A DNA stretch of 64,000 bases, from the IMG/VR virus record IMGVR_UViG_3300046660_000716, positions 1 through 64,000 of that record. One strand, written 5' to 3'. The position numbers and the translations under genes were made by a program. Below are positions 638 to 16,025 of the stretch, piece by piece; position 1 is the first letter of the stretch, and every line of letters starts with the position of its first letter. The notes below the pieces were generated by a model that saw only the letters and a list, made by a program, of their open reading frames with translations, was not told where the DNA came from and made no database searches.

Positions 638-1405
638 TTATGCTATGGAGCGCGCCAGGGGTATGACGACGTTCCGTATGTTGTGGGTGATGTCTATCTC
701 GCTCTTGTCGATGTCGGTGCCGTCGCTGTCTATCAGGTACAGGGACCGGCCGGCGTGGCGCGCGAAGGCCGACGCCGAGTTGAACTCGCGGTAGAACCCC
801 GCGGGGAGGCGGAGCGCCGAGTACTCCGAGAGGAACTGCTGCAGCGTCGCCGCCGCCTCCACCCTGTCGGCGCGCTCGATCAGCCCGAGGACGTCGAGCA
901 CCATGCGCGTCACGAACTGGCGGTGCAGGTGGCGCTTCTCCTCCGGCACGCCCTTCAGGTCCACGGTCCCGCGCCTCGGCACGCCGTAGACCTCGACCGT
1001 CCCCAGCTTGGCGAACGCCGTGTAGCCGTTCTTGAGCTTGAACTTGGTGCCGTCGCTCAGCACCAGCCGGGCGGGAGGCGGGCCGGTAACGAACACCGCA
1101 TCCCGCTTGACCGAGAGGATCCGGTCGTCCCCGATGCTGTTGATCTGCAGCATGTTCTCCACGCGGCGCCGGATGCCGTCGGTGATCTTCCCGGAGAGCG
1201 CCTTCAGCTCCGGCGTCCTGGAGAGCTTGCCGATCGCGACGGACTGCTGGTGCTTCGGCAGGGCCTCGACCTCAGCCAGGACGGCGCGCGGAAGCAGCCC
1301 CTCGGACCGGATCACGGTCATGCCGGCCGAAACCATGTCGACCTCCGTGATCTGTCCGACGAACACGTCGACCGGCGCCGTGTAATTCATGCCTGGCAAA
1401 GCCAT
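638..1405 (-). CDS. family B DNA polymerase palm-like protein (short, no exonuclease domain)
   Basis: EVDMVSAGMTVI resembles PolB motif A (DxxS); ILSVKRDAVFV resembles motif C; only 255 aa. Confidence 0.5.
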   Translation of the reverse strand: MALPGMNYTAPVDVFVGQITEVDMVSAGMTVIRSEGLLPRAVLAEVEALPKHQQSVAIGKLSRTPELKALSGKITDGIRRRVENMLQINSIGDDRILSVKRDAVFVTGPPPARLVLSDGTKFKLKNGYTAFAKLGTVEVYGVPRRGTVDLKGVPEEKRHLHRQFVTRMVLDVLGLIERADRVEAAATLQQFLSEYSALRLPAGFYREFNSASAFARHAGRSLYLIDSDGTDIDKSEIDITHNIRNVVIPLARSIA

Positions 1406-1417
1406 CTGCTCTCCTAG

Positions 1418-2833
1418 TTATGCTGCCTTCGATGTCACGATCTGCTTGATGCGCTCGTTGAACTCCACGATGTACATCGGCGAGTTAGGCATGCGCACCA
1501 GGAACCCGCGCACGATGCCGCCCTTGCCGTCCTTCGACTCCTGCGAGGAGACGCTCATGCCCGACGGATCGCCGCCGTGCGAGGAGATGAACTGCTGGAA
1601 CATCAGCAGGAAGGTGTTGTCGTTGGCCATGGCTTCCTCGCCGATCGCCTCGTCCATCAGCCAGTCGGTCAGGCTGTCGGTAGCGTAGATCACGGCGGTG
1701 GCGCGGGGCGCGACCAGGGGGATGACCGGTTCCTCCGGCTCGTTGGCGACGATTGCCGGCTCATCCGCTGGGATCGGAGGAACCACCGCGGCCTCGGCCG
1801 TGCGCTCCTCGTTCGACACCGGGGGCAGAGCCTCGCCGGAGCCGTCGCCCGTGAGTTCAGTGAGCACCTCGGCTTCTGGTTGACTGGAAGCGTTGAGTAC
1901 CACTTCCAGGGTGACGTGCTGCAGTTGGGGCGCCACGCTGCCCTGTTGGACGAGCTCGTCGATTTTGGCGCGCGTCTCATTCGTTACCTGATCGACAACC
2001 TCGTACTCCAGCACGCTTTGTGGCCGGATCACAGGAGAAGCAAGTGCATCGTCGATGCCGTCGGCGGCCGGGGCTTTGGCCTGGGTCCGCGGCGGACTTG
2101 CGTCGTCCAGCACGCTCTGCAGGTACGCCGCGATGGCCTCGCCCTCGGGCCAGTCGCCGCCGCTCAGGGCCATGGCGTGCGCCGCCAGGTCGTTGCACAG
2201 GTCGTGGACGCGCTCGCCCCAGTCGACCGAGGAAGCGAACGGCTGGGTGATGGCCGGCCAGATCACGTCGTTGAAGAACTTCTCCTCGTCGGGCCACGCC
2301 TTGGTGGTGTCCAGCACTTCTTCGAACGAGATGCCGATGAAGGCGTCCGCCTCGGCCTTGATGAACTCGGGGGTGCGGTCGCGGCCGCCGGTGCGTTCGG
2401 CGAAGTTGGCACAGTCGCGGTCGTAGATCATGAAGACCTTGATCAGCCGCACGGGCTGGTCGCCGAACTTGCCGCCGAAGTCGCCGCGCGCCAGCGCCTC
2501 GTTGTGCTCCCTGGTGTCCTTCTCCAGGTCGCGCACGCCGTTGGCGTCCACGATGGTCAGGACCGCCGTCCCGCCCGGGGTCGGCTCGGGGATGGTGCCG
2601 TAGAAGTTCCCGTTGAACTCCGTGCGGCACGTCATCGCGCCCTTCATGTGCTGGTACTGCGCTTTCGTCACGAAGACGTAGTCGTCGCCCGGCCCGCGTC
2701 GCTTGCGGGTCGTGCTCTGCGGCCACTTCAGCAGGTTCTCCGGCCAGCCCTTCTGCAGGCGGGCCGCGAGCTCGGACTTGCCGGAGCCCGATGGGCCGCT
2801 GAATGCTACGATCGTGATGTGGTTCTGTGTCAT
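1418..2833 (-). CDS. guanylate kinase-like P-loop protein with long C-terminal extension
   Basis: FSGPSGSGKS Walker A, TTRKRR..DDYVFV, EFNGNFYGT are GMK hallmarks; ATG at 2833 with GAGG RBS. Confidence 0.8.
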   Translation of the reverse strand: MTQNHITIVAFSGPSGSGKSELAARLQKGWPENLLKWPQSTTRKRRGPGDDYVFVTKAQYQHMKGAMTCRTEFNGNFYGTIPEPTPGGTAVLTIVDANGVRDLEKDTREHNEALARGDFGGKFGDQPVRLIKVFMIYDRDCANFAERTGGRDRTPEFIKAEADAFIGISFEEVLDTTKAWPDEEKFFNDVIWPAITQPFASSVDWGERVHDLCNDLAAHAMALSGGDWPEGEAIAAYLQSVLDDASPPRTQAKAPAADGIDDALASPVIRPQSVLEYEVVDQVTNETRAKIDELVQQGSVAPQLQHVTLEVVLNASSQPEAEVLTELTGDGSGEALPPVSNEERTAEAAVVPPIPADEPAIVANEPEEPVIPLVAPRATAVIYATDSLTDWLMDEAIGEEAMANDNTFLLMFQQFISSHGGDPSGMSVSSQESKDGKGGIVRGFLVRMPNSPMYIVEFNERIKQIVTSKAA

Positions 2834-2921
2834 GTTTGTCCTCAAGGTTAAACGGATTGCAGGCCCGTATATCATTTGGTTGCGACGGCCTTCCGCCCAC
2901 AAAACTAGGGCGGTTTGGACT

Positions 2922-2940
2922 GAAGCATGATATAATTCCA
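2922..2940 (+). promoter_or_regulatory. putative promoter (TATAAT -10-like) in AT-rich divergent intergenic region
   Basis: GAAGCATGATATAATTC upstream of the RNAP gene; related GAAGCATATAATTC at ~49622. Confidence 0.4.
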
Positions 2941-3005
2941 CGTATTTTGTTTGATCAAGAAAGGCCGAACTATTCCATGTTCGCACATCAAAAGGGAGAA
3001 AACAC

Positions 3006-4415
3006 GTGAGAATCACACTGAACCCGCTCGACGAGGGCTTCGACCCGTTCTTCACCGTAACGGACCACTCGCCGGTGATCGAGAAGACCGGCAAGTTCTC
3101 GGACGGCGGCGTGTTCTCCGAGCGCATCTTCGGCCGCATCCCGTCGAGCGGCCGCGAGTACGCGTGCGACTGCCCGTCCACGCAGAAGCCCATCGAGGGC
3201 CGGTTCTACGAGGGCACGATCTGCCCCAAGTGCAACGCCGCCGTCACCTGCCGCGACACGGTGTTTTCCAAGAAGGGCTGGGTCGACCTGGGCGCGCACC
3301 AGATCATCAGCCCGCTCTTCTTCCAGTACTTCGCCAAGGTGGTCGGTCCGACCCAGCTGGCCAAGATCGTCCACCAGAAGCGCGTCCTGACCATGGACGG
3401 CATCATCAAGGTGGCGGACGACGCCGGACCGTTCGACAACATGGGCCTCGCCGAGTTCTCCCGGCGCTGGCCCGAGGTCCTGGACCACTTCGAGGCCAAG
3501 AAGAAGTCCGATCCGCGCGTCGCCGAGTTCGCCCGCATCATCCGCGAGAACCCGACGATGGTGATGACCTCCAAGATCCTGGTTTTCAACCACATCCTGC
3601 GCCCGGCGCTGGTCGTGGAGAAGCAGATGATCTTCGACGAGGTCAACAACCTGTACAACCTGCTGATCAGCAACGCGTCGGTGCTGAACGACTACACGCC
3701 GGAGGAGGCCACGGACGGCAACGTCAACGCGGTCCTGTGGCGCATCCAGGAGCGGGCGAACGAGATCTTCGACCACGTCCTGTTCGTGCTGTCCGGCAAG
3801 GGCGGCTACCTGCGCGGCCAGCTGCTCGGCAACCGCATCAACTTCTGCGGCCGCATGGTCATCACCCCGCTCGGCCCCGGCCACGAGCAGGACGAGGTCG
3901 AGGTCCCGTACCTGGCCTTCCTGGAGATGTACCGCTTCCAGCTGACCAACCTGACCGCCCGCATGAAGGGCATCTCGCTAGCGAAGGCCAACGACCTGTG
4001 GCACGAGGCCCAGACCAAGTTCGACCCGTCGATGTACGCGGCGATGCTCCAGCTGATCAAGCGCGGCCCGGACGGCCACGGCCTGTACGCGCTGCTGAAT
4101 CGCAACCCGACCATCGCGTTCGGCTCCATCCTGCGCGTGCGCATCACCGGCATCAAGCGCGACCCGCTCGACTACACGATGAGCGTGCACAACGGCATCC
4201 TGAAGCTGATCGGCGGCGACTACGACGGCGACGTCTGCGCCCTGATCCCGTTCCTGGACCGCGACTTCGCCGACGCCTTCCGCGTCTTCGACCCGCGCCT
4301 CATGATGATCTCGCGCGACGGCCCACGCGTCAACCGCGCCATGCTCATGGACAAGGACCACGTCCTGGGCCTGAGCGTGCTGACCGAGGACGATCCGCGC
4401 CTCATGGTCGCATAG
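3006..4415 (+). CDS. phage multisubunit RNA polymerase beta-prime subunit, N-terminal/catalytic part (split RNAP)
   Basis: GVFSERIFG, Zn finger CDC...CPKC, LSGKGGYLR, NRNPTI, catalytic GGDYDGD; ends shortly after the catalytic loop. Confidence 0.9.
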   Translation: MRITLNPLDEGFDPFFTVTDHSPVIEKTGKFSDGGVFSERIFGRIPSSGREYACDCPSTQKPIEGRFYEGTICPKCNAAVTCRDTVFSKKGWVDLGAHQIISPLFFQYFAKVVGPTQLAKIVHQKRVLTMDGIIKVADDAGPFDNMGLAEFSRRWPEVLDHFEAKKKSDPRVAEFARIIRENPTMVMTSKILVFNHILRPALVVEKQMIFDEVNNLYNLLISNASVLNDYTPEEATDGNVNAVLWRIQERANEIFDHVLFVLSGKGGYLRGQLLGNRINFCGRMVITPLGPGHEQDEVEVPYLAFLEMYRFQLTNLTARMKGISLAKANDLWHEAQTKFDPSMYAAMLQLIKRGPDGHGLYALLNRNPTIAFGSILRVRITGIKRDPLDYTMSVHNGILKLIGGDYDGDVCALIPFLDRDFADAFRVFDPRLMMISRDGPRVNRAMLMDKDHVLGLSVLTEDDPRLMVA

Positions 4416-4488: not shown

Positions 4489-4761
4489 ATGCTTTTCCTG
4501 AAAGTCATGTACGACGACGGGCTGCCCGACACGTCGCGCGCGAAGTCGTTCAAGGTCATCCAGCTGGAGGACGACCTGCTGGTCGACTTCTTCAAGGAGT
4601 CGCCGGAGGTCCGCGGTCAGGGCGACTTCAACGAGAAGTACCTGCACACCGCCCGCGTCATGCGCGGCGGCGAGGTCGTCGAGCAGTTCGCCCTCAAGGG
4701 CACGGCGTACCTGATGACCGAGCGCGGCGCCACGATCGCCACCTACCAGCCGATCGGTTAA
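4489..4761 (+). CDS. hypothetical protein
   Basis: 90-aa ORF, AGGAG RBS, followed by terminator. Confidence 0.75.
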   Translation: MLFLKVMYDDGLPDTSRAKSFKVIQLEDDLLVDFFKESPEVRGQGDFNEKYLHTARVMRGGEVVEQFALKGTAYLMTERGATIATYQPIG

Positions 4762-4767
4762 ACAGCA

Positions 4768-4798
4768 GGCGAAGCCCCTCCGGGGCTTCGCCATTTTC
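4768..4798 (+). terminator. intrinsic terminator
   Basis: GGCGAAGCCCC-TCC-GGGGCTTCGCC followed by ATTTTC. Confidence 0.7.
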
Positions 4799-6290: not shown

Positions 6291-7220
6291 ATGACGATGC
6301 CAACAGCAACGACCGACAACTTCGTCGGTCTCTTCGGTCGCCAGGCCCCGATCGGCCTCGACATACCGCAGTGGGTCACCGTGTACGTGCCGCACGGCGC
6401 GTGGCAGAAGCAGGAGGTCGGCGGGACCGTCGGCGGTTTCATGGCGGTCCTGGTGGAGGGCCTGGCGGTGATCGGGCTCACCGGGGTCACGATCGTCATC
6501 GACGAGAACGTGAAGACCTGGTCCATGCACAGCCTGAACGACCTCGGGGCCACGCTCAAGGGCGCGGTCGCGCCGAGCCGGCCCTACTTCCGGATCATCG
6601 TCTCCAACGTGGCGGCGGCCCTCGAGAACGACGGGGCGACCATGAGCGGCCCTCTGCTCGTCGTCACCAACGGCGAGGCGGTCGCCGTGCCGGAGGCGGT
6701 GCTGAGGGGCGGCGACGCGATCTGCGTGGACGTCGCCACCACGATGGTCGCCAAGACCACGCACCCGTACGAGCTGTCGAAGGACGCCATTCAGGAGCTG
6801 GGCGTCAAGGACCTGTACAAGCAGCCGCAGTGGGCCGAGAAGTGGTCGCGGACCGTCCTGCGCTCGACCACCGCCCTGATGGCGCTGAACGTCCTGGCCA
6901 AGCCCGAGCGCTTCGGCATGAACCGCTTCTTCTTCGCCTGCGACTTCCTCGACGAGACGATCATGCAGGCCGTCAACGCGCGGGGTGTTCGCCCTCGCTT
7001 CCGCGACGAAAAGAAGACGCGAACCAAGAAAACGAAAGACGCAGCTGCTGTTCAGCCCGATCCACCGACCGACGGCCCCGCTCCCGCGTCGGCCGCTGGC
7101 ATGGGCGAGGCGATCCTGGAGGCGGCATCCGTCGTCTTCGGAACCGACCACGTGCGCCAGACGGCCGACTTCCTCCAGATGTTCGCCGACCAGATCAACA
7201 CGCAACCGCAATTCGCATAA
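6291..7220 (+). CDS. hypothetical protein, first gene of the putative Ubl-system operon
   Basis: 309 aa, AAGGAG RBS, 9-nt gap to the next gene. Confidence 0.75.
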   Translation: MTMPTATTDNFVGLFGRQAPIGLDIPQWVTVYVPHGAWQKQEVGGTVGGFMAVLVEGLAVIGLTGVTIVIDENVKTWSMHSLNDLGATLKGAVAPSRPYFRIIVSNVAAALENDGATMSGPLLVVTNGEAVAVPEAVLRGGDAICVDVATTMVAKTTHPYELSKDAIQELGVKDLYKQPQWAEKWSRTVLRSTTALMALNVLAKPERFGMNRFFFACDFLDETIMQAVNARGVRPRFRDEKKTRTKKTKDAAAVQPDPPTDGPAPASAAGMGEAILEAASVVFGTDHVRQTADFLQMFADQINTQPQFA

Positions 7221-7229
7221 GGAACCACC

Positions 7230-9155
7230 ATGGAAGAGACCCAAGCACCGGCAGCACCGCCTCGACGCGCCAGCAGCCCGGTAGTAGCTCCGGTCAGGGA
7301 CCGGCCCGCCGGATCGAGCACGCTGCGCTCCCTGCGCGAGCTCTCGCCGGAGGCGGTGGCGGAGCTGAATAAGGCGCCGTCCATCCCGACGTACATGTAC
7401 GTCGACGTCTCCACCTGGTACGTGGCAGACCAGAAGGGCATCCCGATCAAGGCCATTGAGGTCAGCAGTGTCCCGACCGGCTACGCGCGCACCATGTACA
7501 TCTCCTGGCTGAGCGAGCAGCGCTCGTTCTGCTGGCGGGGTATGCGATATGTGTACTCATGCCACCCGGACGAGCACCCTGGTGAGGACGACGTAATCGT
7601 CGACCGCAGCTACCAGTTCCCCCATCTGAGCGACAAAGATCCGAGCGCCATCGACATCCCGATCCTCCACGCCCTGCACTACCTGCTGAGCGGCCATTCG
7701 ACCCAGGTCACGGTGGACGCCTACGCGCTGGGCGTGGACCCGCTCGCCGCGATCCGCGACTGGTCGGCCGACAAGGTCGCTGCGTTCGGCCAGTGGGCCG
7801 TGTACATCCGCGGCTCCGTGACCGCCACGACCTTCACCGTGCTGGAGATGGCGTCGCTCTACGAGTCCGAGACCGAGGGCATCCTGCGCGGACGCCTCGA
7901 CTGGGTGCGCTTCCCGGACGGCGACGGCTGCGGCAACGTCCTCGCGGTCAGCGAGCTCAGCTACGTCGGCGAGGACTTCGAGGACGAGCTTGGCGTGCCG
8001 CACTGGCGGGTCGGCGACGAGTGGACGGCCAACGTCATGGACCGCGACGGCATACTGCACGCCCACGTGGACGTCAAGAACTTCGGCGTTGTGCCACGAT
8101 CCCGCGCCCACAAGCTCATGGAGCTCGCGGCCAAGATGAGCGGTGCGGTCGTCTCCAAGCTGAATCTGGCCTCGGGCGGCAACACGTTCGCGGACATCGA
8201 GGGCTTCTCGATGGAATCGCTCGACCAGATGATCGCGTTCATCGGCAGCGACTCGGTGGACAGCCTCGTCACCTGGGAGCAGCTGAAGCGAGGCCACACG
8301 CACATCAACCAGGTGCCGATCAGCACAACGATCGGCTACGAGGTGAGCCACTGGGTGGACGCAGCGCTGAGCAAGCTCGTGTGGGCCGGCGCCGCAGAGA
8401 TCACGTCCGCCCTGCGCACAGGCCGCGAGATCAGCATGGACACAATCGACATAAGCGACTTCGCGAAGATCGAGTTCCCGCAGAACGACCTGATCGAGTC
8501 CATCAAGATGCTCAAGGGCGGCACCGTGCGCGTGATCCTGAAGGACGTGGTCTACCCGACCCAGGTCCTGCGCCGCGGCATCACCTACATCGAGGACGAC
8601 GCGGGTTCGGTGCTGAGCGACATGTCCATCAGGGCGTTCGACCTGGACTTCCGCGGCAACCTGACCAAGTTCCCGAACGCCACGGCGTACGCCGACGAGG
8701 CGTGCAAGCACATCGCGCGTCACACCAACATCTCCAGCGGCGGTCGCGTGTGCCTGGGCAACATCAACCAGGGTATGACCGAGGCCGAGATCGCCGCGCG
8801 CGGCGGCTTCGGCATGCCGTCCGTGGGGGACTTCCTGCAGATGCTCCGCCAGTGCAACCTGGACAGCGCGTACCACGGGGGCCGCGAGTTCGTCCTGGCC
8901 GACCCGGAATCGGTCGAGCAGGGCCACTACTCGAACGCGCCGAAGTGGCGCATCCCCGGCCTGCGCCGCATCGAGGTCGACGACTTCGCGGAGCTGCGCA
9001 AGCAGTTCGCAGCCCAGGCCGCCGCTGAGGCGGAGGAAGACGGCGAGGAGGCCGACCCGATCGCCGAGGGCGCCGCCGATGCCGAACCGGCGACGGAGGC
9101 CGAGCCGGAAACTACCGAAGAACCAACAGAGGAGGCCGCAGATGCCGATAACTAG
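7230..9155 (+). CDS. large protein with C-terminal prokaryotic E2 (ubiquitin-conjugating)-like domain
   Basis: HTNISSGGRVCLGN (8721-8762) matches the E2 HPNxxxxGxICL active-site pattern; adjacent ThiF gene; acidic tail. Confidence 0.7.
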   Translation: MEETQAPAAPPRRASSPVVAPVRDRPAGSSTLRSLRELSPEAVAELNKAPSIPTYMYVDVSTWYVADQKGIPIKAIEVSSVPTGYARTMYISWLSEQRSFCWRGMRYVYSCHPDEHPGEDDVIVDRSYQFPHLSDKDPSAIDIPILHALHYLLSGHSTQVTVDAYALGVDPLAAIRDWSADKVAAFGQWAVYIRGSVTATTFTVLEMASLYESETEGILRGRLDWVRFPDGDGCGNVLAVSELSYVGEDFEDELGVPHWRVGDEWTANVMDRDGILHAHVDVKNFGVVPRSRAHKLMELAAKMSGAVVSKLNLASGGNTFADIEGFSMESLDQMIAFIGSDSVDSLVTWEQLKRGHTHINQVPISTTIGYEVSHWVDAALSKLVWAGAAEITSALRTGREISMDTIDISDFAKIEFPQNDLIESIKMLKGGTVRVILKDVVYPTQVLRRGITYIEDDAGSVLSDMSIRAFDLDFRGNLTKFPNATAYADEACKHIARHTNISSGGRVCLGNINQGMTEAEIAARGGFGMPSVGDFLQMLRQCNLDSAYHGGREFVLADPESVEQGHYSNAPKWRIPGLRRIEVDDFAELRKQFAAQAAAEAEEDGEEADPIAEGAADAEPATEAEPETTEEPTEEAADADN

Positions 9156-9813
9156 AGCAGAGGTGGGTCGCCTCGAAATGCGACCCATCATGGCCAACAC
9201 CATGCGACGCCGCCTCAACCTGCTGGGAGTGGGCGGCGTCGGCAGCAACTTCATGCGGCTGATGTGCCACCACGAGGACGAGGTCATGGTCCGCATCTTC
9301 GACATGGACACGGTCGAGCTGCACAACCTGAACCGCGCGAGCATGTTCACGATCGACGACGCGTTCAGCAACGCGAGCAAGGTGAGCGCGATCGCTGCGT
9401 CGTGCAAGCGGCTCGCCAGCGAGCTGTCCGTTACCCCGAGCAACGCCGAGATCGACAGGGACACGGTGCTGCCCAAGGGCTTGGTGATCGACGCGCGGGA
9501 CACGCTGAACCCGACCAAGATCCCGGCGGCGACCTGGCTGAAGCTGGCCTACGACGGCGGCAGCGAGATGAGCTTCACCTGGCTGCCGCACATCGTCTCG
9601 AAACACGTCGTCGACCTGAGCAACGGTCGCAGCAACGCGTACGCCGTCGTGCCGAGCTTCTACGTGCCGGCGGCGCTGCTGTCCATCCTGGCCATGCGGT
9701 TCATGCAGTTCGAGAACTTCCTGGAGATCACCGAGATGCGCGCCGGCACCTTCCACATGAACCTTGACGAGATGGTCGACTCCGTCTCATACGAATGGGA
9801 GCCACCGCAATGA
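9142..9813 (+). CDS. ThiF/MoeB/E1-like adenylyltransferase
   Basis: LLGVGGVGS nucleotide-binding loop, FDMDTVELHNLNR, SKV, VIDARD; GAGGAGG RBS; overlaps end of the E2-like gene. Confidence 0.88.
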   Translation: MPITRAEVGRLEMRPIMANTMRRRLNLLGVGGVGSNFMRLMCHHEDEVMVRIFDMDTVELHNLNRASMFTIDDAFSNASKVSAIAASCKRLASELSVTPSNAEIDRDTVLPKGLVIDARDTLNPTKIPAATWLKLAYDGGSEMSFTWLPHIVSKHVVDLSNGRSNAYAVVPSFYVPAALLSILAMRFMQFENFLEITEMRAGTFHMNLDEMVDSVSYEWEPPQ

Positions 9814-10712
9814 GCGACACGCGCATCGAAATCGACCCAAGCACGGCGCGAGTCAGGTCCGTGACGTACCAGGACGTGACTGGCGAGATGATCACCGTCA
9901 CCGAAGGAGCGGTGGCGCCGGCCTTCGAGAACATCGCGTCGGCGCATCGCCACCACGCGCATTCCGATGTCGCCGACATGGCGACCCAGACCATGGCTGA
10001 GATCGAAGCGGCCATCGGCGAGCCGCCGATCATCTCGATCCAAGCTCCGGTGACCGAGGACGTGATGGTGCCGGAGGAGGACACGGCCGAAGTGCAGACC
10101 GTTCTACGCTTCCTCGAGGACGACTCGATCGACATGAAGCGCACCGTGGGCAAGATCCGCTCCCTGCCGCCGGAGCGCGTCCGCGACGCGCTCTCCGTGG
10201 CCTACGCCGACATCATCGGCGGCCGAGCCGGTCCTGCCCCGAGCATCGCCCGCGCTCTGCACATGGTGGTCTCGCCGTTCCTGACCGCGCTGCCGGGCCT
10301 GGTCCGCGACCACGGACCGCAGAACGAGCAGCTGCGCCGCCTCACCGCCGAGATCCTGGTGATCCTCAAGGGCGTGTACGTGGCCGAGTCCAAGTCGCGC
10401 AATAACACGCTGATCATCCGCCCCCTGCGCGGATCCGTCACGGGCCGCGACCTGACGCCGATGCAGCTGCTGCAGATGCAGCTCAAGATGTCGGCGACCC
10501 TGGAGCGCGAGCTGGCGGAGCTCGCCAGCAACGGCGGCTTCTGGAGCGTATTCATGAACGCCCACCAGTACCGCCAGATGGCGCTGCACTCCCCGGTCAA
10601 CCTGATCAACACCATCGCGGAGATGGGAACTTACCTCAAGGCTGTCTCGTTCAAGACCAAATTGGACAATCAACAGCTTAAGATTCTTCAGGCGTTCTTC
10701 CGTACTGCCTGA
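9810..10712 (+). CDS. hypothetical alpha-helical protein in the Ubl cluster
   Basis: ATGA overlap with the E1-like gene; ~300 aa. Confidence 0.75.
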   Translation: MSDTRIEIDPSTARVRSVTYQDVTGEMITVTEGAVAPAFENIASAHRHHAHSDVADMATQTMAEIEAAIGEPPIISIQAPVTEDVMVPEEDTAEVQTVLRFLEDDSIDMKRTVGKIRSLPPERVRDALSVAYADIIGGRAGPAPSIARALHMVVSPFLTALPGLVRDHGPQNEQLRRLTAEILVILKGVYVAESKSRNNTLIIRPLRGSVTGRDLTPMQLLQMQLKMSATLERELAELASNGGFWSVFMNAHQYRQMALHSPVNLINTIAEMGTYLKAVSFKTKLDNQQLKILQAFFRTA

Positions 10713-10745
10713 AGCACCAGCAACAATCCCACTCACTACGATTGA

Positions 10746-10765
10746 CGGGGCCGTGCACGGCCCCG
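10746..10765. promoter_or_regulatory. perfect 20-bp palindrome just upstream of an RBS
   Basis: CGGGGCCGTGCACGGCCCCG. Confidence 0.55.
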
Positions 10766-10781
10766 CTTGAAAGGAATCACA

Positions 10782-11522
10782 ATGGCAACAGCTACTCCAC
10801 GCGGCGCATCCTCCATCCCTGACCTGGAATTCCTGAAGGCGTACAACGACCCGAAGGCATCCAACGCCCAGATCCTGGAGGCCCTGCAAACCGACTGGAC
10901 TGCCGTGGGCGTCAAGCTGCGCTCCGCACGTCTGCAGCTGCACACCCTGGTGACCCGCACCGGCGGCGCCAAGGGTACCGCCGAAGCGAAGGACAAGGAC
11001 GACCTGGCGCTGGAAGCCCAGATCTTCAAGAAGCACGAGATCGTGCAGCCGCAGCCGAACGGCCCCTACATCTCGCTGCAAGAGCGCATCGACGCGGGCA
11101 AGATCAAGGTCAACTCCAAGCTGGAAGTGACCGAGCTGGAATCCAAGGGCGAGACCGCCAAGCCGGCCGCGAAGGCCGACGCCCCGGCCAAGGGCAAAGC
11201 TGACGCCAAGGCAGACAAGGCGAAGCCCGCCGACAAGGCCAAGGACTCGGGCAAGGCCGCCGCGGAAGAGCCAGCCAAGCCGACCAAGACCAAGGTAGCC
11301 GCCGATCCGCGCGCCTTCGTGTTCCAGGCCAACATCTTCAGCACGAACTACGAGTTCGCCGGCGCGTCGAAGAACGACGCCACCAACGCCCTCTTCACCA
11401 AGCTGCAAGAGCTGAACGTTAGCAAGGTCCAGATCTCCGACAACAACGGCCGCAGCTGCGGCTTCGCCGACATCGTGCACGGCGGCAAGTACAAGTTCAG
11501 CAAGCAGCTGACCGCGGCGTAA
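10782..11522 (+). CDS. candidate ubiquitin-like modifier: N-terminal domain, Lys/Ala-rich linker, C-terminal putative beta-grasp domain
   Basis: AAGGA RBS; last ~70 aa read as beta-beta-alpha-beta-beta-beta ending SKQLTAA; lies between the E1-like and JAB genes. CDS is solid, function is inferred. Confidence 0.5.
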   Translation: MATATPRGASSIPDLEFLKAYNDPKASNAQILEALQTDWTAVGVKLRSARLQLHTLVTRTGGAKGTAEAKDKDDLALEAQIFKKHEIVQPQPNGPYISLQERIDAGKIKVNSKLEVTELESKGETAKPAAKADAPAKGKADAKADKAKPADKAKDSGKAAAEEPAKPTKTKVAADPRAFVFQANIFSTNYEFAGASKNDATNALFTKLQELNVSKVQISDNNGRSCGFADIVHGGKYKFSKQLTAA

Positions 11523-11539
11523 AGGCGCGCCGGAAGGTA

Positions 11540-11563
11540 GCGATGGACCCGAGGGTCCATCGC
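11540..11563 (+). promoter_or_regulatory. stem-loop without U-tract after the Ubl candidate gene
   Basis: GCGATGGACCC-GA-GGGTCCATCGC. Confidence 0.5.
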
Positions 11564-11592
11564 GTCTAGACGAACACAAAGAAGGGTAAAGA

Positions 11593-12483
11593 ATGCGCAA
11601 CGATCACCTCATCAGCACGGGCCTGCAGCTTCACAGCAAGGCGTTCGTCGTGATGCCGCAGGACATCTGCCGCACCATGGCCGCGGCTCTGTCCGCCATC
11701 CCCGACCCGAGCCTCGAGTACGGCATGTACCTGAAGGGCGACTGGGATCCGAAGACCTGCACCGTCATCGTTCGCCCCGGCGAATTCTATGTACCGGAGC
11801 AGGTCGTGAGCGGCGCCTCCATCCAGTTCACCGAGGAGCCGCCCGGCCCGGAGTGGAACGTGGTCATCCACCGTCACCCGCCGGGCGTGAACCGCTTCTC
11901 CAGCACCGACGAGAACTCGATCAACGAGGAGTTCCTCGCCTCGGTCCTGTTCATGCCGCCGTGGGGCTTCCCCGACGCCGTGGTCAACATCCCGCTGGCG
12001 CCAGGCTCCAAGTTCCAGACCCGCGCCGTTGTCAATCCCGAGGGCACGCTGCTGGACATGCCAGAGGAGCTGACCGCCAAGATCAAGGCCAACGTCAAGC
12101 GCTACACGGCTCCGAAGGTCGAGAAGATGGGCGCCGGCCACGTCACCACCCTGGGACCGGACGAGCGCGCGTCCCTCCAGCGCGAGCTCGGCGAGAGCGG
12201 CCTGGATTTCGACAATGGTGGCTACGGACGTCCGCTGCCCGGCGTGGGCACCGGTAAGATCGGTCAGGCCCGCCAGGTGGCCGGCGGCGGCACCATCCGC
12301 GCGCTGGGCTACGAGCCTGACAAGGTCCGCCCGCGCATCCAGCCGATCCGCGGCGGCAAGGCCAAGCCGGGTCCGCTCAACGGCGACGCCGCCGGACTGG
12401 TGGCCGCAGGCTTCCACGCCTCCGACATCGAGGACATCGCCGACGCGCAGCGCGAGAGCCAGATGATCCGCGTGCAGGGCTAA
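11593..12483 (+). CDS. JAB/MPN+ (JAMM) metalloprotease
   Basis: upstream Glu in LEYGMYL and HRHPPGVNRFSSTD = HxH-x7-S-x2-D; low-complexity C-terminal half. Confidence 0.85.
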   Translation: MRNDHLISTGLQLHSKAFVVMPQDICRTMAAALSAIPDPSLEYGMYLKGDWDPKTCTVIVRPGEFYVPEQVVSGASIQFTEEPPGPEWNVVIHRHPPGVNRFSSTDENSINEEFLASVLFMPPWGFPDAVVNIPLAPGSKFQTRAVVNPEGTLLDMPEELTAKIKANVKRYTAPKVEKMGAGHVTTLGPDERASLQRELGESGLDFDNGGYGRPLPGVGTGKIGQARQVAGGGTIRALGYEPDKVRPRIQPIRGGKAKPGPLNGDAAGLVAAGFHASDIEDIADAQRESQMIRVQG

Positions 12484-13246: not shown

Positions 13247-13396
13247 ATGAACTACTGGAAGATCCTCAAGATCGCCGCGCCCATCCTGGTCGTGATCATC
13301 ACCGCCGTCGTCTGCGCCTTGGGTCAGCCCTCGTCGCCGGCCGACGCCCCGGCACCGGCTACCCAGCCGGCCGCCGGCCCCAACTACAACCTGTGA
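13247..13396 (+). CDS. small single-TM protein
   Basis: MNYWKILKIAAPILVVIITAVVCALGQPSSP...NYNL; fills the gap between neighbours. Confidence 0.6.
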   Translation: MNYWKILKIAAPILVVIITAVVCALGQPSSPADAPAPATQPAAGPNYNL

Positions 13397-13419
13397 CACC
13401 AACGATGAAGGACAGCACC

Positions 13420-14409
13420 ATGAACGTGATGCAACCGAAGTACATCAAGGGCCTGCTGGCCGCCATGCTGGTCATGATGGTTTCCGCCTTCGCCCACGCC
13501 GCGCCGGAAGAGGGCGGCCCGGCCGCCTCCTGCGGCGAGGACGCGCTGGAGATCGCCACCGGCGCCAAGGGCAAGGGCTACTCCCTGCTGTACGCGAACC
13601 TGGAGAAGGTCTGCGGCCAGGTCGTCCCGATGTGCGAGCACCCGACCAACGGCGGCCTGGACAACGTGAACGCGCTGTCCGTCAAGGAAGCCGACCTGGG
13701 CTTCGCCCAGTTGGACACCGCGAGCAGCATGAAGAGCGACGAGAACATCGCCGCCCTGGTCTCCGTGGCCACGCTGAACACGAACTTCATGCACACCGTC
13801 GTGTCGAGCTCCGGCTTCAACGTGCCCGGTCCGAAGAAGTGGGGCGGCATGAAGGACGGCGACCCGATCCAGGTGCAGCTGCGCTCCTTCTCCGACCTGA
13901 AGGGCCGCACGATCGGCGCCGTCGGCTCGGCCGACCTGCTGATCCGCCAGCTGAACAAGCAGCTGGGCTACAACATGACCATCCGCGGCTTCAAGAGCGA
14001 CGCCGACGCGATCCAGGCCATGAAGAACCCGGCCAACATCGTGGCCTTCGTGACGGTCAGCGGATGGCCGCACGGCGCCCTGAAGAACCTGACGCCGGAC
14101 AGCGGCCTGACCCTGGCGAGCTTCGACGCGGTCGTGGCCGCCCCGTACATCGTCAAGCCGCTGAACTACCGCAGCATGGCCGTGTACAACAGCAACACGC
14201 TGGGCGTGCCCAACCTGCTGCTGGCCCGCCAGTTCACGGGCGAGAAGGCCGCCCAGGTCAGCAAGCTGCGCGCCTGCATGGCCTCCAGCCTGACCAAGCT
14301 CCAGCAGGGCAAGTTCGAGCCGGGCTGGAACGAGATGAAGAGCCTGGACGGCGCCAACGACTGGCCGAAGTTCGTGCCGTCGTCGGCCGCCGCGCCGCGC
14401 AAGAAGTAA
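13420..14409 (+). CDS. TAXI-family TRAP-type periplasmic solute-binding-like protein
   Basis: signal peptide; IATGAKGKGY, TNGGLDNVNAL, ADLGFAQLD, SFSDLKGRTI. Confidence 0.8.
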   Translation: MNVMQPKYIKGLLAAMLVMMVSAFAHAAPEEGGPAASCGEDALEIATGAKGKGYSLLYANLEKVCGQVVPMCEHPTNGGLDNVNALSVKEADLGFAQLDTASSMKSDENIAALVSVATLNTNFMHTVVSSSGFNVPGPKKWGGMKDGDPIQVQLRSFSDLKGRTIGAVGSADLLIRQLNKQLGYNMTIRGFKSDADAIQAMKNPANIVAFVTVSGWPHGALKNLTPDSGLTLASFDAVVAAPYIVKPLNYRSMAVYNSNTLGVPNLLLARQFTGEKAAQVSKLRACMASSLTKLQQGKFEPGWNEMKSLDGANDWPKFVPSSAAAPRKK

Positions 14410-14717: not shown

Positions 14718-16025
14718 ATGGCATTCAAAGACGTCACAATCTCCCGGCCCGTGTCCGTAGTGGCACCGGTCATCAGCAGCCTCGCGGGAGCCCTGCGCCG
14801 GTACGTCATGAGCGTGCTGCCGACCGAGTACGTGAGGGACTACTTCATCGACACGGAGCTTCCGATCGTGCGCTTCCAGCAGCGCCGCAAGTTCCGGCCG
14901 ATGATGCACTCGCAGCTGGACATTCGCAAGCTGCCGCTCCTGAGCATCAAGGTGGACTCGACGGCCGACCCATCGCCGTTCGCCACCGGCACGACGTTCT
15001 GGACCAGCACCCGCTTCCTGGACGACCCGACCCGGCTGGCCCGCCTGATCGTCGACGACGACAACCTGCGCTACGTCGGATACGAGACCGAGCGCATGGT
15101 CATGCGGTTCCAGGTGTCGTTCACCGTGGAGACTGACCTCAAGGCCGCCGAGCTGATGATGTACCTGCGCCGCAGCCTGCCGATCGACCAGAAGGTGTAC
15201 CTTAACGACGTGGACGTCGCCACCGAGGTGCCGATGGACGTGCTGCGCCCGATCTGGACCGACATGGGGCTGGGCGACGGCACGGACCCCGACGACGTGG
15301 CGGAATTCCGCGAGTACCTGACGGCCTCGACCGCCGGCCTGGTGGAGCAGGTGACGAGCTCCTCGACGGGCCGCCTCGTCTTCGCCTTCCACTACCGGGC
15401 GAACCCGATCGTCAACATCACCTCGGTCCCTTCCATGACGCCCATCCGGGACGGCAACGTCGTGACGAAGGCGCAGGTCGACATCCCGTTCGAGATGGAC
15501 GTCATGGTGCCGGTGGCGTACGCGCTGCGCCAGGAGCAGTCCCTGGGGTCGGTCACCCCCATAAACCCCACGCCGTTCGACATCGGCGACGAGGGCGCGG
15601 GGGCGTACTACAGCGCCCAGCACCGGACGCGCCCGCCGCAGACCGTGGCGGACAACCTGACGCTCGTCTACTTCACCGCGGTCGTGACGGCCGACGTGGA
15701 TCCCGCCCGCCCGGGCGCCCCCGACGTGACGGACCTGTCCACGTCCGTGGACGGCAGGATGCGGGCGTACATCCACGCCCTCCTGTCGGGCGGAGCACAG
15801 GACAAGGTCGAGGCCAAGCTCTGGCTGGACGGCGACGAGATCGGGGCCGGGTGGGAGTTCGACCCGGCCACGTGGGCGCTGACCATCGACAAGGTGGCGT
15901 TCCAGCCGCGCCAGAAGTACCACTTTGGACTGTACACCGACCTGTCCCGCCTCGACGAGCTCGCGCCGGTCGTCCGCAGGCCGCAGGCCCCGAGCCCCAC
16001 GTTCAAGCGCATCAACACCGTGTAG
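14718..16025 (+). CDS. hypothetical protein, probably virion structural
   Basis: 435 aa, beta-rich, phage-typical codon use, near structural genes. Confidence 0.6.
   Translation: MAFKDVTISRPVSVVAPVISSLAGALRRYVMSVLPTEYVRDYFIDTELPIVRFQQRRKFRPMMHSQLDIRKLPLLSIKVDSTADPSPFATGTTFWTSTRFLDDPTRLARLIVDDDNLRYVGYETERMVMRFQVSFTVETDLKAAELMMYLRRSLPIDQKVYLNDVDVATEVPMDVLRPIWTDMGLGDGTDPDDVAEFREYLTASTAGLVEQVTSSSTGRLVFAFHYRANPIVNITSVPSMTPIRDGNVVTKAQVDIPFEMDVMVPVAYALRQEQSLGSVTPINPTPFDIGDEGAGAYYSAQHRTRPPQTVADNLTLVYFTAVVTADVDPARPGAPDVTDLSTSVDGRMRAYIHALLSGGAQDKVEAKLWLDGDEIGAGWEFDPATWALTIDKVAFQPRQKYHFGLYTDLSRLDELAPVVRRPQAPSPTFKRINTV

Follow-up and report, generated by a model that had tools for sequence, protein, structure and literature searches.

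To examine a candidate ubiquitin-like conjugation locus in a virus, we analyzed bases 1-64000 of the uncultured virus contig IMGVR_UViG_3300046660_000716, which is 259,338 bp long (hereafter, this whole 64,000-nt stretch is called the window). The window belongs to a jumbo phage, and it encodes an RNA polymerase subunit, DnaB, a Dda helicase, SbcD, structural proteins, and endolysins. Between positions 6291 and 12483 we found six co-directional open reading frames on the + strand, at 6291-7220, 7230-9155, 9079-9813, 9795-10712, 10767-11522, and 11593-12483. All of them have the codon-position GC composition typical of coding genes (GC3 of 0.87-0.91, GC1 > GC2). The genes are closely packed, with a gap of 9 nt, an overlap of 14 nt (using the corrected start of the ThiF gene), an overlap of 19 nt, and gaps of 54 and 70 nt. 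The comparison with orthologues showed that the ThiF gene starts at 9142 (Met22 of the open reading frame), and the gene of the ubiquitin-like protein (Ubl) most likely starts at the ATG at 10782, resulting in a protein of 246 aa. The features of the block are the following:

6291..7220 (+), g1, a conserved accessory protein of 309 aa of unknown function, always immediately upstream of the E2 gene
7230..8393 (+), N-terminal part (about 390 residues) of the 641-aa E2 protein, a variable region of unknown fold and a candidate substrate- or partner-binding part
8394..9029 (+), predicted UBC/E2-like catalytic domain (residues 389-600), with His498-Thr-Asn500 at 8721-8729, the catalytic Cys508 at 8751-8753, and the Asn543-Leu-Asp-Ser546 motif at 8856-8867
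9030..9155 (+), acidic low-complexity tail of the E2 protein, overlapping the start of the ThiF gene
9142..9813 (+), E1-like ThiF-family adenylyltransferase of 223 aa from the corrected start (the open reading frame opens at 9079), with the nucleotide-binding loop GVGGVGS at 9226-9246
9795..10712 (+), g4, a conserved accessory protein of 305 aa of unknown function, whose C-terminus is conserved to the last residues
10782..11135 (+), N-terminal globular domain of the Ubl protein (residues 1-118 of the 246-aa form), a "cargo" domain of unknown function
11142..11306 (+), disordered Ala/Lys/Pro/Thr-rich linker of the Ubl protein
11313..11522 (+), predicted ubiquitin-like beta-grasp domain (residues 178-246), ending in KQLTAA directly before the stop codon
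11593..11997 (+), JAB/MPN+ (JAMM) metalloprotease domain of the 296-aa protein, with Glu42 at 11716-11718, His93 and His95 at 11869-11877, Ser103 at 11899-11901, and Asp106 at 11908-11910
11998..12483 (+), variable C-terminal half of the JAB protein, with a short conserved motif near the end

An earlier note, made from the sequence alone, had proposed that these genes form a phage-encoded E1, E2, Ubl, and JAB conjugation operon. All the motifs on which it relied are present, and each of the four proposed roles received independent support. The E1 matches the Pfam family ThiF (PF00899) with an E-value of 2e-12 and 47.2 bits, above the curated cut-off of 28.1. It contains GVGGVGS and DMDTVELHNLNR. 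All orthologues start at Met22, and GxGGxG, D54, D56, R65, K80, D117, and D120 are invariant over 7 sequences, including distant ones. However, no cysteine is invariant among them.

In the E2, the sequence HTNISSGGRVCLGN is found at 8721-8762 and includes Cys508. In 21 diverse homologues, H498, N500, C508, G510, N543, and S546 are invariant, the consensus is HPNIxxxGxVCLGDL, with Pro or Thr between the His and the Asn, and the spacing between His and Cys (+10) is that of canonical E2s. The Pfam family UQ_con is the only recurrent one, and was hit by 6 of the 21 members, whereas the scans of the single E2 protein against Pfam, NCBIfam, and PADLOC were negative. When we used a profile of the family to search the PDB, about 60 of the 64 hits were E2 enzymes, almost only eukaryotic, including UBE2C (E 0.0032, the best one), UBE2D, UBC9, UBE2F, and UBE2T, and the alignment covers both the HPN-Cys stretch and the N-x-D-S motif. 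These E-values are weak (0.003-1), and the UBC fold itself could not be confirmed, because AlphaFold gave a pLDDT of only 30-60 for residues 395-600. Distant variants of the protein keep HPN/HAN, the Cys, and N[LF]DS[PS]. The N-terminal region was modelled with a pLDDT of 70-90 over residues 40-350, but Foldseek against the PDB gave only meaningless matches (TM 0.05). This region is poorly conserved and is shorter in distant relatives of 324-442 aa, while the acidic tail is not conserved in orthologues.

The C-terminal domain of the 246-aa protein was modelled with a pLDDT of about 90 and has the beta-beta-alpha-beta-beta order. The top hits of Foldseek in the PDB are NEDD8, the Bil Ubl (8tyz_B, 8tyx_A), SUMO1, Caldiarchaeum ubiquitin, and Ufm1, with TM of 0.5-0.6 on the target and probabilities of 0.9-1.0, although the E-values are only 0.01-0.2. 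The hits in the viral library are also dominated by Ubls. Interestingly, Q-x-TAA is found in 45 of 46 homologues: 10 end there, 30 carry one type of extension, 3 a second type, and 2 have other tails. Such unrelated extensions after a conserved end are as in Ubl precursors, but the terminus is Ala-Ala, not the Gly or Gly-Gly of characterised Ubls. Distant cassettes have a protein in the same position that ends in PAAG, LAAA, SAAN, or KQLVAA plus an extension. The N-terminal domain of the protein (pLDDT above 90) is highly conserved, notably in a DWTAVGVKLRS block, and has no family match. The linker has a pLDDT below 50 (residues 121-175) and varies in length and sequence among homologues.

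The 296-aa protein keeps the full E...HxH-x7-S-x2-D set, in this phage with HRH. Prok-JAB (PF14464) is the only Pfam family hit, by 5 of 5 orthologues (best E 8.6e-5), even if the window copy scores 0.019, below the cut-off. E42, H93, H95, S103, and D106 are invariant in 6 sequences, including the 37%-GC relative. We could not assign the two remaining genes. For g1, there was no match in Pfam, PHROG, NCBIfam, PADLOC, or the PDB-profile searches, and for g4 there was no family or PDB match. Both are nevertheless conserved in position: orthologues of g1 are 42-45% identical in the related loci L002 and L004-L007, 30% in L009, and 23% in L010, and those of g4 are 29-33% identical but lack its first 79 residues or so.

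To assess whether these genes are inherited together, we looked at their context in other contigs. The same gene order is kept in at least nine other large-phage contigs (L002, L004-L007, L009, L010, L013, and L014), spanning 36-65% GC and up to 353 kb in length, and the genes are co-conserved in order in every related phage locus examined. The set was not found in cultured phages, and pattern scans found nothing in 185,579 species' genomes. The E2 family has only 41 representatives among 1.84 billion, and every context examined is a large-phage contig. The set does not match the models of Bil, CBASS, Bub, or PRTRC: the only PADLOC hits among the six proteins are weak ones of the ThiF domain to CBASS E1-E2 models.

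Taken together, these results suggest that the block most likely encodes a phage-autonomous, reversible Ubl conjugation system, a reading to which we give a probability of around 0.7. In the absence of biochemical data, the chemical steps, the direction of transfer, and the target are all inferred. The modifier would present a flexible tail ending in KQLTAA after its beta-grasp domain. In relatives whose gene continues past this point, the JAB protease would first remove the extension, whereas in this phage the mature end is encoded directly. The E1 would then adenylate the terminal alanine with ATP. Since the E1 has no conserved cysteine, the activated tail probably passes straight to Cys508 of the UBC-like domain, or by way of an E1 Tyr/Ser oxyester as in Bub systems, to give a thioester. 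There is a precedent in BubCD for an E1 without a catalytic cysteine that still conjugates (PMC11601596). The modifier would be transferred to an amino group of a target chosen by the large N-terminal region of the E2 protein and/or by g1 and g4, thus attaching its N-terminal domain to the target through a long linker, and the JAB protease would reverse the mark. No E3 or target is identifiable. The block keeps a fixed position beside RNA-polymerase and replication genes across very divergent phages. Hence, we think that it serves the infection programme of the phage rather than being a recently captured host defence island. The purposes suggested in the earlier note, such as the tagging of host defence proteins, remain guesses.

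Alternatively, these enzymes might serve in the exclusion of other viruses or plasmids, i.e., as a Bil-like immune system tagging proteins of competing phages, for example tail proteins, in a co-infected cell. All characterised bacterial Ubl systems (Bil, type II CBASS, probably Bub) act in anti-phage immunity, Bil works by tagging a phage tail protein (PMC11601596), and the Bil Ubl is among the Foldseek hits. Yet, this seems unlikely given the near absence of PADLOC matches, the restriction of the E2 family to large-phage contigs in the contexts examined, the lack of hits in the pattern scans of species' genomes, and the fixed syntenic position across phages from 36% to 65% GC, which points to long vertical inheritance rather than a mobile defence island. 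A sulfur-carrier or thiocarboxylate pathway, where the JAB would only trim a ThiS/MoaD-like carrier donating sulfur to a cofactor, nucleoside, or DNA modification, as in CysO/Mec and QbsE/QbsD, is even more doubtful. The best named matches of the E1 are ThiF and MoeB, it lacks a conserved cysteine like MoeB, and JAB-processed carriers with C-terminal extensions have been described (PMC1779556). However, the UBC-type domain with invariant HPN and Cys is always adjacent, and the modifier, with its Ala-Ala end and an extra domain of 120 residues on a long linker, is unlike the small Gly-Gly carriers. Furthermore, in agreement with the earlier note, which found no thiamine or molybdopterin synthesis genes nearby, we found no ThiS, MoaD, ThiG, MoaE, rhodanese, or desulfurase family among 55 other predicted proteins of the window at E <= 1e-4.

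A role in virion assembly without covalent tagging, where the beta-grasp protein and the JAB would act as assembly chaperone and processing protease like the lambda/T1 pair of TAPI and TAPK, is comparably improbable. Ubl plus JAB pairs in phage tail-assembly clusters are the only previously described phage case (PMC1779556), but here an E1 and an E2 with intact catalytic residues are always present, there is no NlpC/P60 domain, and the neighbours are an RNA-polymerase subunit, a cell-wall hydrolase, and, in relatives, DNA ligase, not tail genes. Finally, the negative single-sequence scans and the weak E-values to known families might suggest a chance assembly of unrelated hypothetical genes or an inactive relic. 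This is made very unlikely by the invariance of all catalytic residues across deep divergence, the conserved gene order in at least nine loci, and the confident beta-grasp model.

This type of machinery has so far been tied to bacterial anti-phage defence rather than to phages. The Bil systems (BilA Ubl, BilB E2, BilC JAB protease, BilD E1; operon type 6d of Iyer et al. 2006, PMC1779556) have the same four parts on separate genes in one operon, and their Ubl is among the best structural matches of the modifier (TM 0.56-0.59). But Bil is host-encoded immunity, and 6d-type E2s are reported to lack the classical histidine, whereas the phage E2 has the classical His-Pro/Thr-Asn and an extra N-terminal region of about 390 residues. 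The Ala-Ala terminus, the N-terminal domain and long linker of the modifier, and the lack of a conserved Cys in the E1 also differ. Eukaryotic and archaeal (Caldiarchaeum/Asgard-type) ubiquitin cascades share with the block the HPN motif with Cys 10 residues after the His, the downstream N-x-D-S-P motif, and the combination of a JAB/MPN+ protease (Rpn11-like in the cascades) with a beta-grasp modifier, and classical E2s are the only sequence-level relatives detectable. In contrast, the phage block has no RING or other recognisable E3, its E1 is a minimal adenylation domain of 223 residues without a Cys domain, the modifier ends in Ala-Ala, and the similarity to E2s is weak, with the fold unconfirmed.

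In Bub (6E/DUF6527) operons, the E1 also lacks a catalytic cysteine yet supports conjugation, and a JAB trims a Ubl precursor to expose the reactive end (PMC11601596). The Bub E2 uses serine, however, and the operon has a DUF6527 serine protease and a JAB-E1 fusion, whereas here the E2 cysteine is invariant, JAB and E1 are separate genes, and no DUF6527 hit was found. In type II CBASS, an E1, E2, and JAB trio (the Cap2 E1-E2 fusion and Cap3) acts on a protein C-terminus, and the weak PADLOC and NCBIfam hits of the ThiF domain are to Cap2-type models. Here E1 and E2 are not fused, a dedicated beta-grasp modifier is present, and there is no CD-NTase or effector gene in the window. Finally, the Ubl-system parts previously reported in viruses of prokaryotes are the lambda/T1 tail-assembly Ubl (TAPI) with JAB (TAPK) (PMC1779556) and the E1-like genes of Asgard archaeal viruses (bioRxiv 10.1101/2021.07.29.454249). 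Those viruses carry only part of a system, Ubl plus JAB or E1 only, while here all four predicted activities are encoded together.

The contig IMGVR_UViG_3300046660_000716 (259,338 bp), of which the window is the first 64 kb, has about 65% GC and is a jumbo phage. The window encodes a phage-type multisubunit RNA-polymerase subunit, a DnaB-like helicase, a Dda-like helicase, an SbcD-like nuclease, structural and head-decoration proteins, and endolysins. By the RNA-polymerase subunit, the nearest cultured phages are Yersinia phage phiR1-37 and Bacillus phages AR9 and PBS1, at only 32-33% identity, and when the protein at 14718-16025 is also considered, phiR1-37 and the AR9/PBS1 group remain the closest, at 22-33% identity. 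None of them has a detectable relative of the E2 or ThiF protein. More generally, megablast of the six-gene block and tblastn of the E2 and ThiF proteins against 50,697 cultured-phage records found nothing. The features of the window used in the following analysis are:

1418-3193, region to which a guanylate-kinase-like gene of relatives corresponds
3006-4415, RNA-polymerase subunit gene
4489-4761, small gene
4768-4792, + strand, strong terminator (bidirectional hairpin)
9142, + strand, corrected start of the ThiF gene (E1-like)
9795-10712, + strand, g4, conserved protein of the block without detectable relatives outside these phages
10782-11522, + strand, gene of the candidate ubiquitin-like (Ubl) modifier
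13393-14409, gene of a 338-aa protein, two genes downstream of the JAB gene
14718-16025, second protein used to find cultured relatives

The earlier note had described six co-directional genes including E2-like, ThiF, JAMM and candidate Ubl proteins. All six + strand ORFs exist at the positions it gave, all show the codon-position GC pattern of real genes in this genome, and all the motifs that it listed are present. Two starts were revised. Orthologues move the ThiF start to 9142, so that its overlap with the E2 gene is 14 nt, and the modifier gene probably starts at the ATG at 10782. The window copy of g4 also has about 79 extra N-terminal residues that are absent from orthologues, and its true start may thus lie further downstream. 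The protein g4 is conserved right up to its last residues (...LKMLQAFFRTA, or ...RAS, or ...RTN). A promoter scan found no sigma-70-like sites. No + strand terminator-like site lies inside the block. The only convincing one between 4400 and 14800 is upstream of the block at 4768-4792, just after the small gene at 4489-4761, where a hairpin of 11 pairs, 9 of them G-C, is followed by a T-run on the + strand.

The ThiF gene belongs to the E1/ThiF-MoeB adenylyltransferase superfamily, as it passes the curated threshold of Pfam PF00899 (2e-12, 47.2 bits against a cut-off of 28.1). Its other named matches in the NCBIfam and PADLOC scans are ThiF, MoeB, the archaeal SAMP-activating E1, and Cap2-type E1-E2 models, all far below those models' own cut-offs. 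A PDB profile search with the ThiF alignment was not informative. In seven orthologues, including two very distant ones, the GxGGxG loop, D54, D56, R65, K80, D117, and D120 are invariant. However, no cysteine is invariant, whereas a canonical thioester-forming E1 has a conserved catalytic cysteine in or near the crossover loop. Tyr137, Ser141, and Ser144 are invariant in that region. Hence, the protein looks like an active adenylating enzyme that cannot form the usual E1 thioester. The E1 of the Bub system, which also lacks the cysteine yet supports conjugation, is a published precedent (PMC11601596).

Single-sequence Pfam, PADLOC, NCBIfam, and PHROG scans of the 641-aa E2 protein found nothing useful, as was the case for g1, g4, and the Ubl protein. 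AlphaFold of the full protein gave only pLDDT 30-60 for residues 395-600, where the order of the secondary-structure elements is compatible with a UBC fold but unreliable, and Foldseek of this model was meaningless. A PDB profile search with a shallow alignment of 9 sequences gave no link either. We broadened the profile with distant homologues, and an exhaustive search with the C-terminal domain found only 41 representatives among 1.84 billion proteins. In an alignment of 21 diverse members, His498, Asn500, Cys508, Gly510, Asn543, and Ser546 are invariant. The consensus reads HPNIxxxGxVCLGDL, which is the canonical E2 active-site string, with the His-to-Cys spacing (+10) of UBE2D. UQ_con was the only Pfam family hit repeatedly, by 6 of 21 members, although the best E-value (0.006) is below threshold. 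A profile of this alignment searched against PDB sequences returned 64 hits at E <= 10, and nearly all of the 60 listed are E2 enzymes (UBE2C E 0.0032, UBE2D, UBC9, UBE2F, UBE2T). The alignment covers both the HPN-Cys stretch and the downstream N-x-D-S-P motif. More distant cassette variants keep HPN or HAN, the Cys with a slightly shorter loop, and N[LF]DS[PS]. These results suggest that this is a UBC-type E2 domain, as the earlier note had proposed, that it is of the classical kind, and that it is fused to an N-terminal region of about 390 residues without detectable relatives.

The gene at 10782-11522 has 46 homologues. AlphaFold with a 27-sequence alignment gave a confident N-terminal domain (residues 8-118), a disordered linker (residues 121-175), and a confident C-terminal domain (residues 178-241, pLDDT about 90) with the beta-beta-alpha-beta-beta order of a beta-grasp fold. 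While a PDB profile search with the sequence gave nothing or noise, Foldseek of the model against the PDB returned almost only ubiquitin-like or beta-grasp domains among the top 50. These include NEDD8, SUMO1, Smt3, Ufm1, Caldiarchaeum ubiquitin, and the Ubl of the bacterial Bil system, with target TM-scores of 0.5-0.6. A search against viral structures added only further Ubl-type hits and nothing for the N-terminal domain. The most telling feature is the C-terminus. The string KQLTAA is conserved in 45 of 46 homologues (one has RQTTAA). Ten proteins, including the window's, stop exactly after it, thirty continue with one conserved type of extension, three with an unrelated second type, and two with other tails. 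The extensions seen in orthologues are not encoded elsewhere in the window. In more distant cassettes the protein in this position ends ...KQLVAA plus 32 residues, ...PAAG, ...LAAA, or ...SAAN. A fixed internal end with interchangeable extensions is how Ubl precursors look. The unusual point is that the conserved end is Ala-Ala, and not the Gly or Gly-Gly of characterised ubiquitin-like modifiers.

The window copy of the JAB protein scores below the curated threshold of Prok-JAB (PF14464; E 0.019, 15.3 bits against a cut-off of 25), and a PDB profile search with the JAB alignment was not informative. However, all five orthologues hit Prok-JAB and nothing else (best E 8.6e-5). The residues of the zinc site, Glu42, His93, His95, Ser103, and Asp106, are invariant in 6 sequences, even in a 37%-GC relative. 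Because the modifier of this phage needs no trimming, the protease here would mainly act as a deconjugase.

The order g1 - E2 - ThiF - g4 - Ubl - JAB is kept in L002 (253 kb), L004 (97 kb), L005, L006, and L007, in L009 (IMG/VR, 64 kb), in L010 (37% GC), in L013 (353 kb, 57% GC), and in L014 (235 kb, 36% GC), all of them loci of related phages, with occasional extra small genes inserted. The relative L015 (229 kb, 40% GC) has a rearranged variant, at 970-3592 and 7001-9992, with two ThiF-family genes, a 630-aa protein with a JAMM-like H-x-H-x7-S-x2-D string, a NADAR-domain gene, an E2-type protein (553 aa) with HPNI...C and PNFDSP, and a 208-aa protein ending ...SAAN. In a further cassette variant, on a metagenome contig, a 72-aa gene lies between the ThiF-adjacent gene and the later genes and might be a free-standing small Ubl. 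The ThiF family has about 97 clusters, many on contigs of 80-350 kb, and almost all lack a functional name in the source databases. A scan of 185,579 species' genomes, limited to two peptide patterns, found no E2 relative. PDB profile searches with g1 and g4 and a Pfam scan of their orthologues also found nothing, and the two proteins have no detectable relatives outside these phages.

The block lies next to RNA-polymerase subunit genes in both the high-GC and the low-GC lineages. In L009 the subunit gene homologous to window 3006-4415 is split (1057-3737). Residues 1-370 match at 1063-2160 and residues 372-462 at 3465-3737, and the insert of about 1.3 kb carries a 310-aa ORF (2224-3156), possibly an intron or a homing element. 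Three relatives carry a TerD / TerC / vWA-TerF-like / TelA cluster of tellurite-resistance-type stress genes (L004:1-3326, L005:62-3663, L006:37-3647), just beyond the guanylate-kinase-like gene that corresponds to window 1418-3193.

The evidence fits a phage-encoded reversible Ubl conjugation system, although its chemistry, targets, and biological purpose are all inferred. We favour a role in the phage's own infection programme because of the deep, syntenic, apparently vertical conservation, the main rival being an exclusion role against competing phages. A sulfur-carrier role is unlikely, given the always-linked E2 with its invariant cysteine and the absence of sulfur-transfer genes in the window. 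The 338-aa protein at 13393-14409, which is conserved in L004, has a marginal match to the NMT1_3 family, a periplasmic-binding-like fold (29.4 bits against a cut-off of 27), and to phrog_6856. It is the only hit in the neighbourhood with a name from the thiamine area, but we do not read it as a thiamine gene. A role in tail assembly was also considered and rejected.

A broader reading, which is only tentative, is that a whole deep clade of RNA-polymerase-encoding jumbo phages (36-65% GC, up to 353 kb) depends on its own vertically inherited ubiquitin-type system as part of the core infection programme. In this system, a cargo-bearing modifier with an Ala-Ala terminus would be activated by a cysteine-less E1 and covalently attached to host or phage proteins by an E2 of the classical eukaryote-type HPN class. 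If so, this would be the first viral system that writes and erases Ubl marks in the bacterial world, and large phages might be a reservoir of classical-type E2 enzymes outside eukaryotes and archaea, which bears on how the ubiquitin system arose.

Ubiquitin-like conjugation in bacteria has recently emerged as an anti-phage weapon (Bil, type II CBASS, Bub). A complete, conserved set on the phage side would show that viruses of bacteria also write and erase such marks, as eukaryotic viruses do. The block belongs to none of the catalogued families, i.e., Bil, type II CBASS, Bub, or PRTRC. For Bil and the other defence Ubl systems of PADLOC-DB 2.0, only weak CBASS E1-E2 hits to the ThiF domain were found (E 7e-5 to 0.05), and nothing for the other five proteins. 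Type II CBASS has a CD-NTase plus effector next to Cap2/Cap3, and no such family was found among 55 other proteins of the window. For PRTRC, no component model was among the NCBIfam hits, and there is no ParB family in the window. We found no paper describing a complete E1, E2, Ubl, and JAB set in a bacteriophage, and a survey of 224 jumbo-phage genomes mentions none (PMC7824862), although our literature search was not complete and prior description cannot be excluded. The known cases in viruses of prokaryotes are partial: a Ubl plus JAB in lambdoid tail-assembly clusters (PMC1779556) and E1-like genes in Asgard archaeal viruses.
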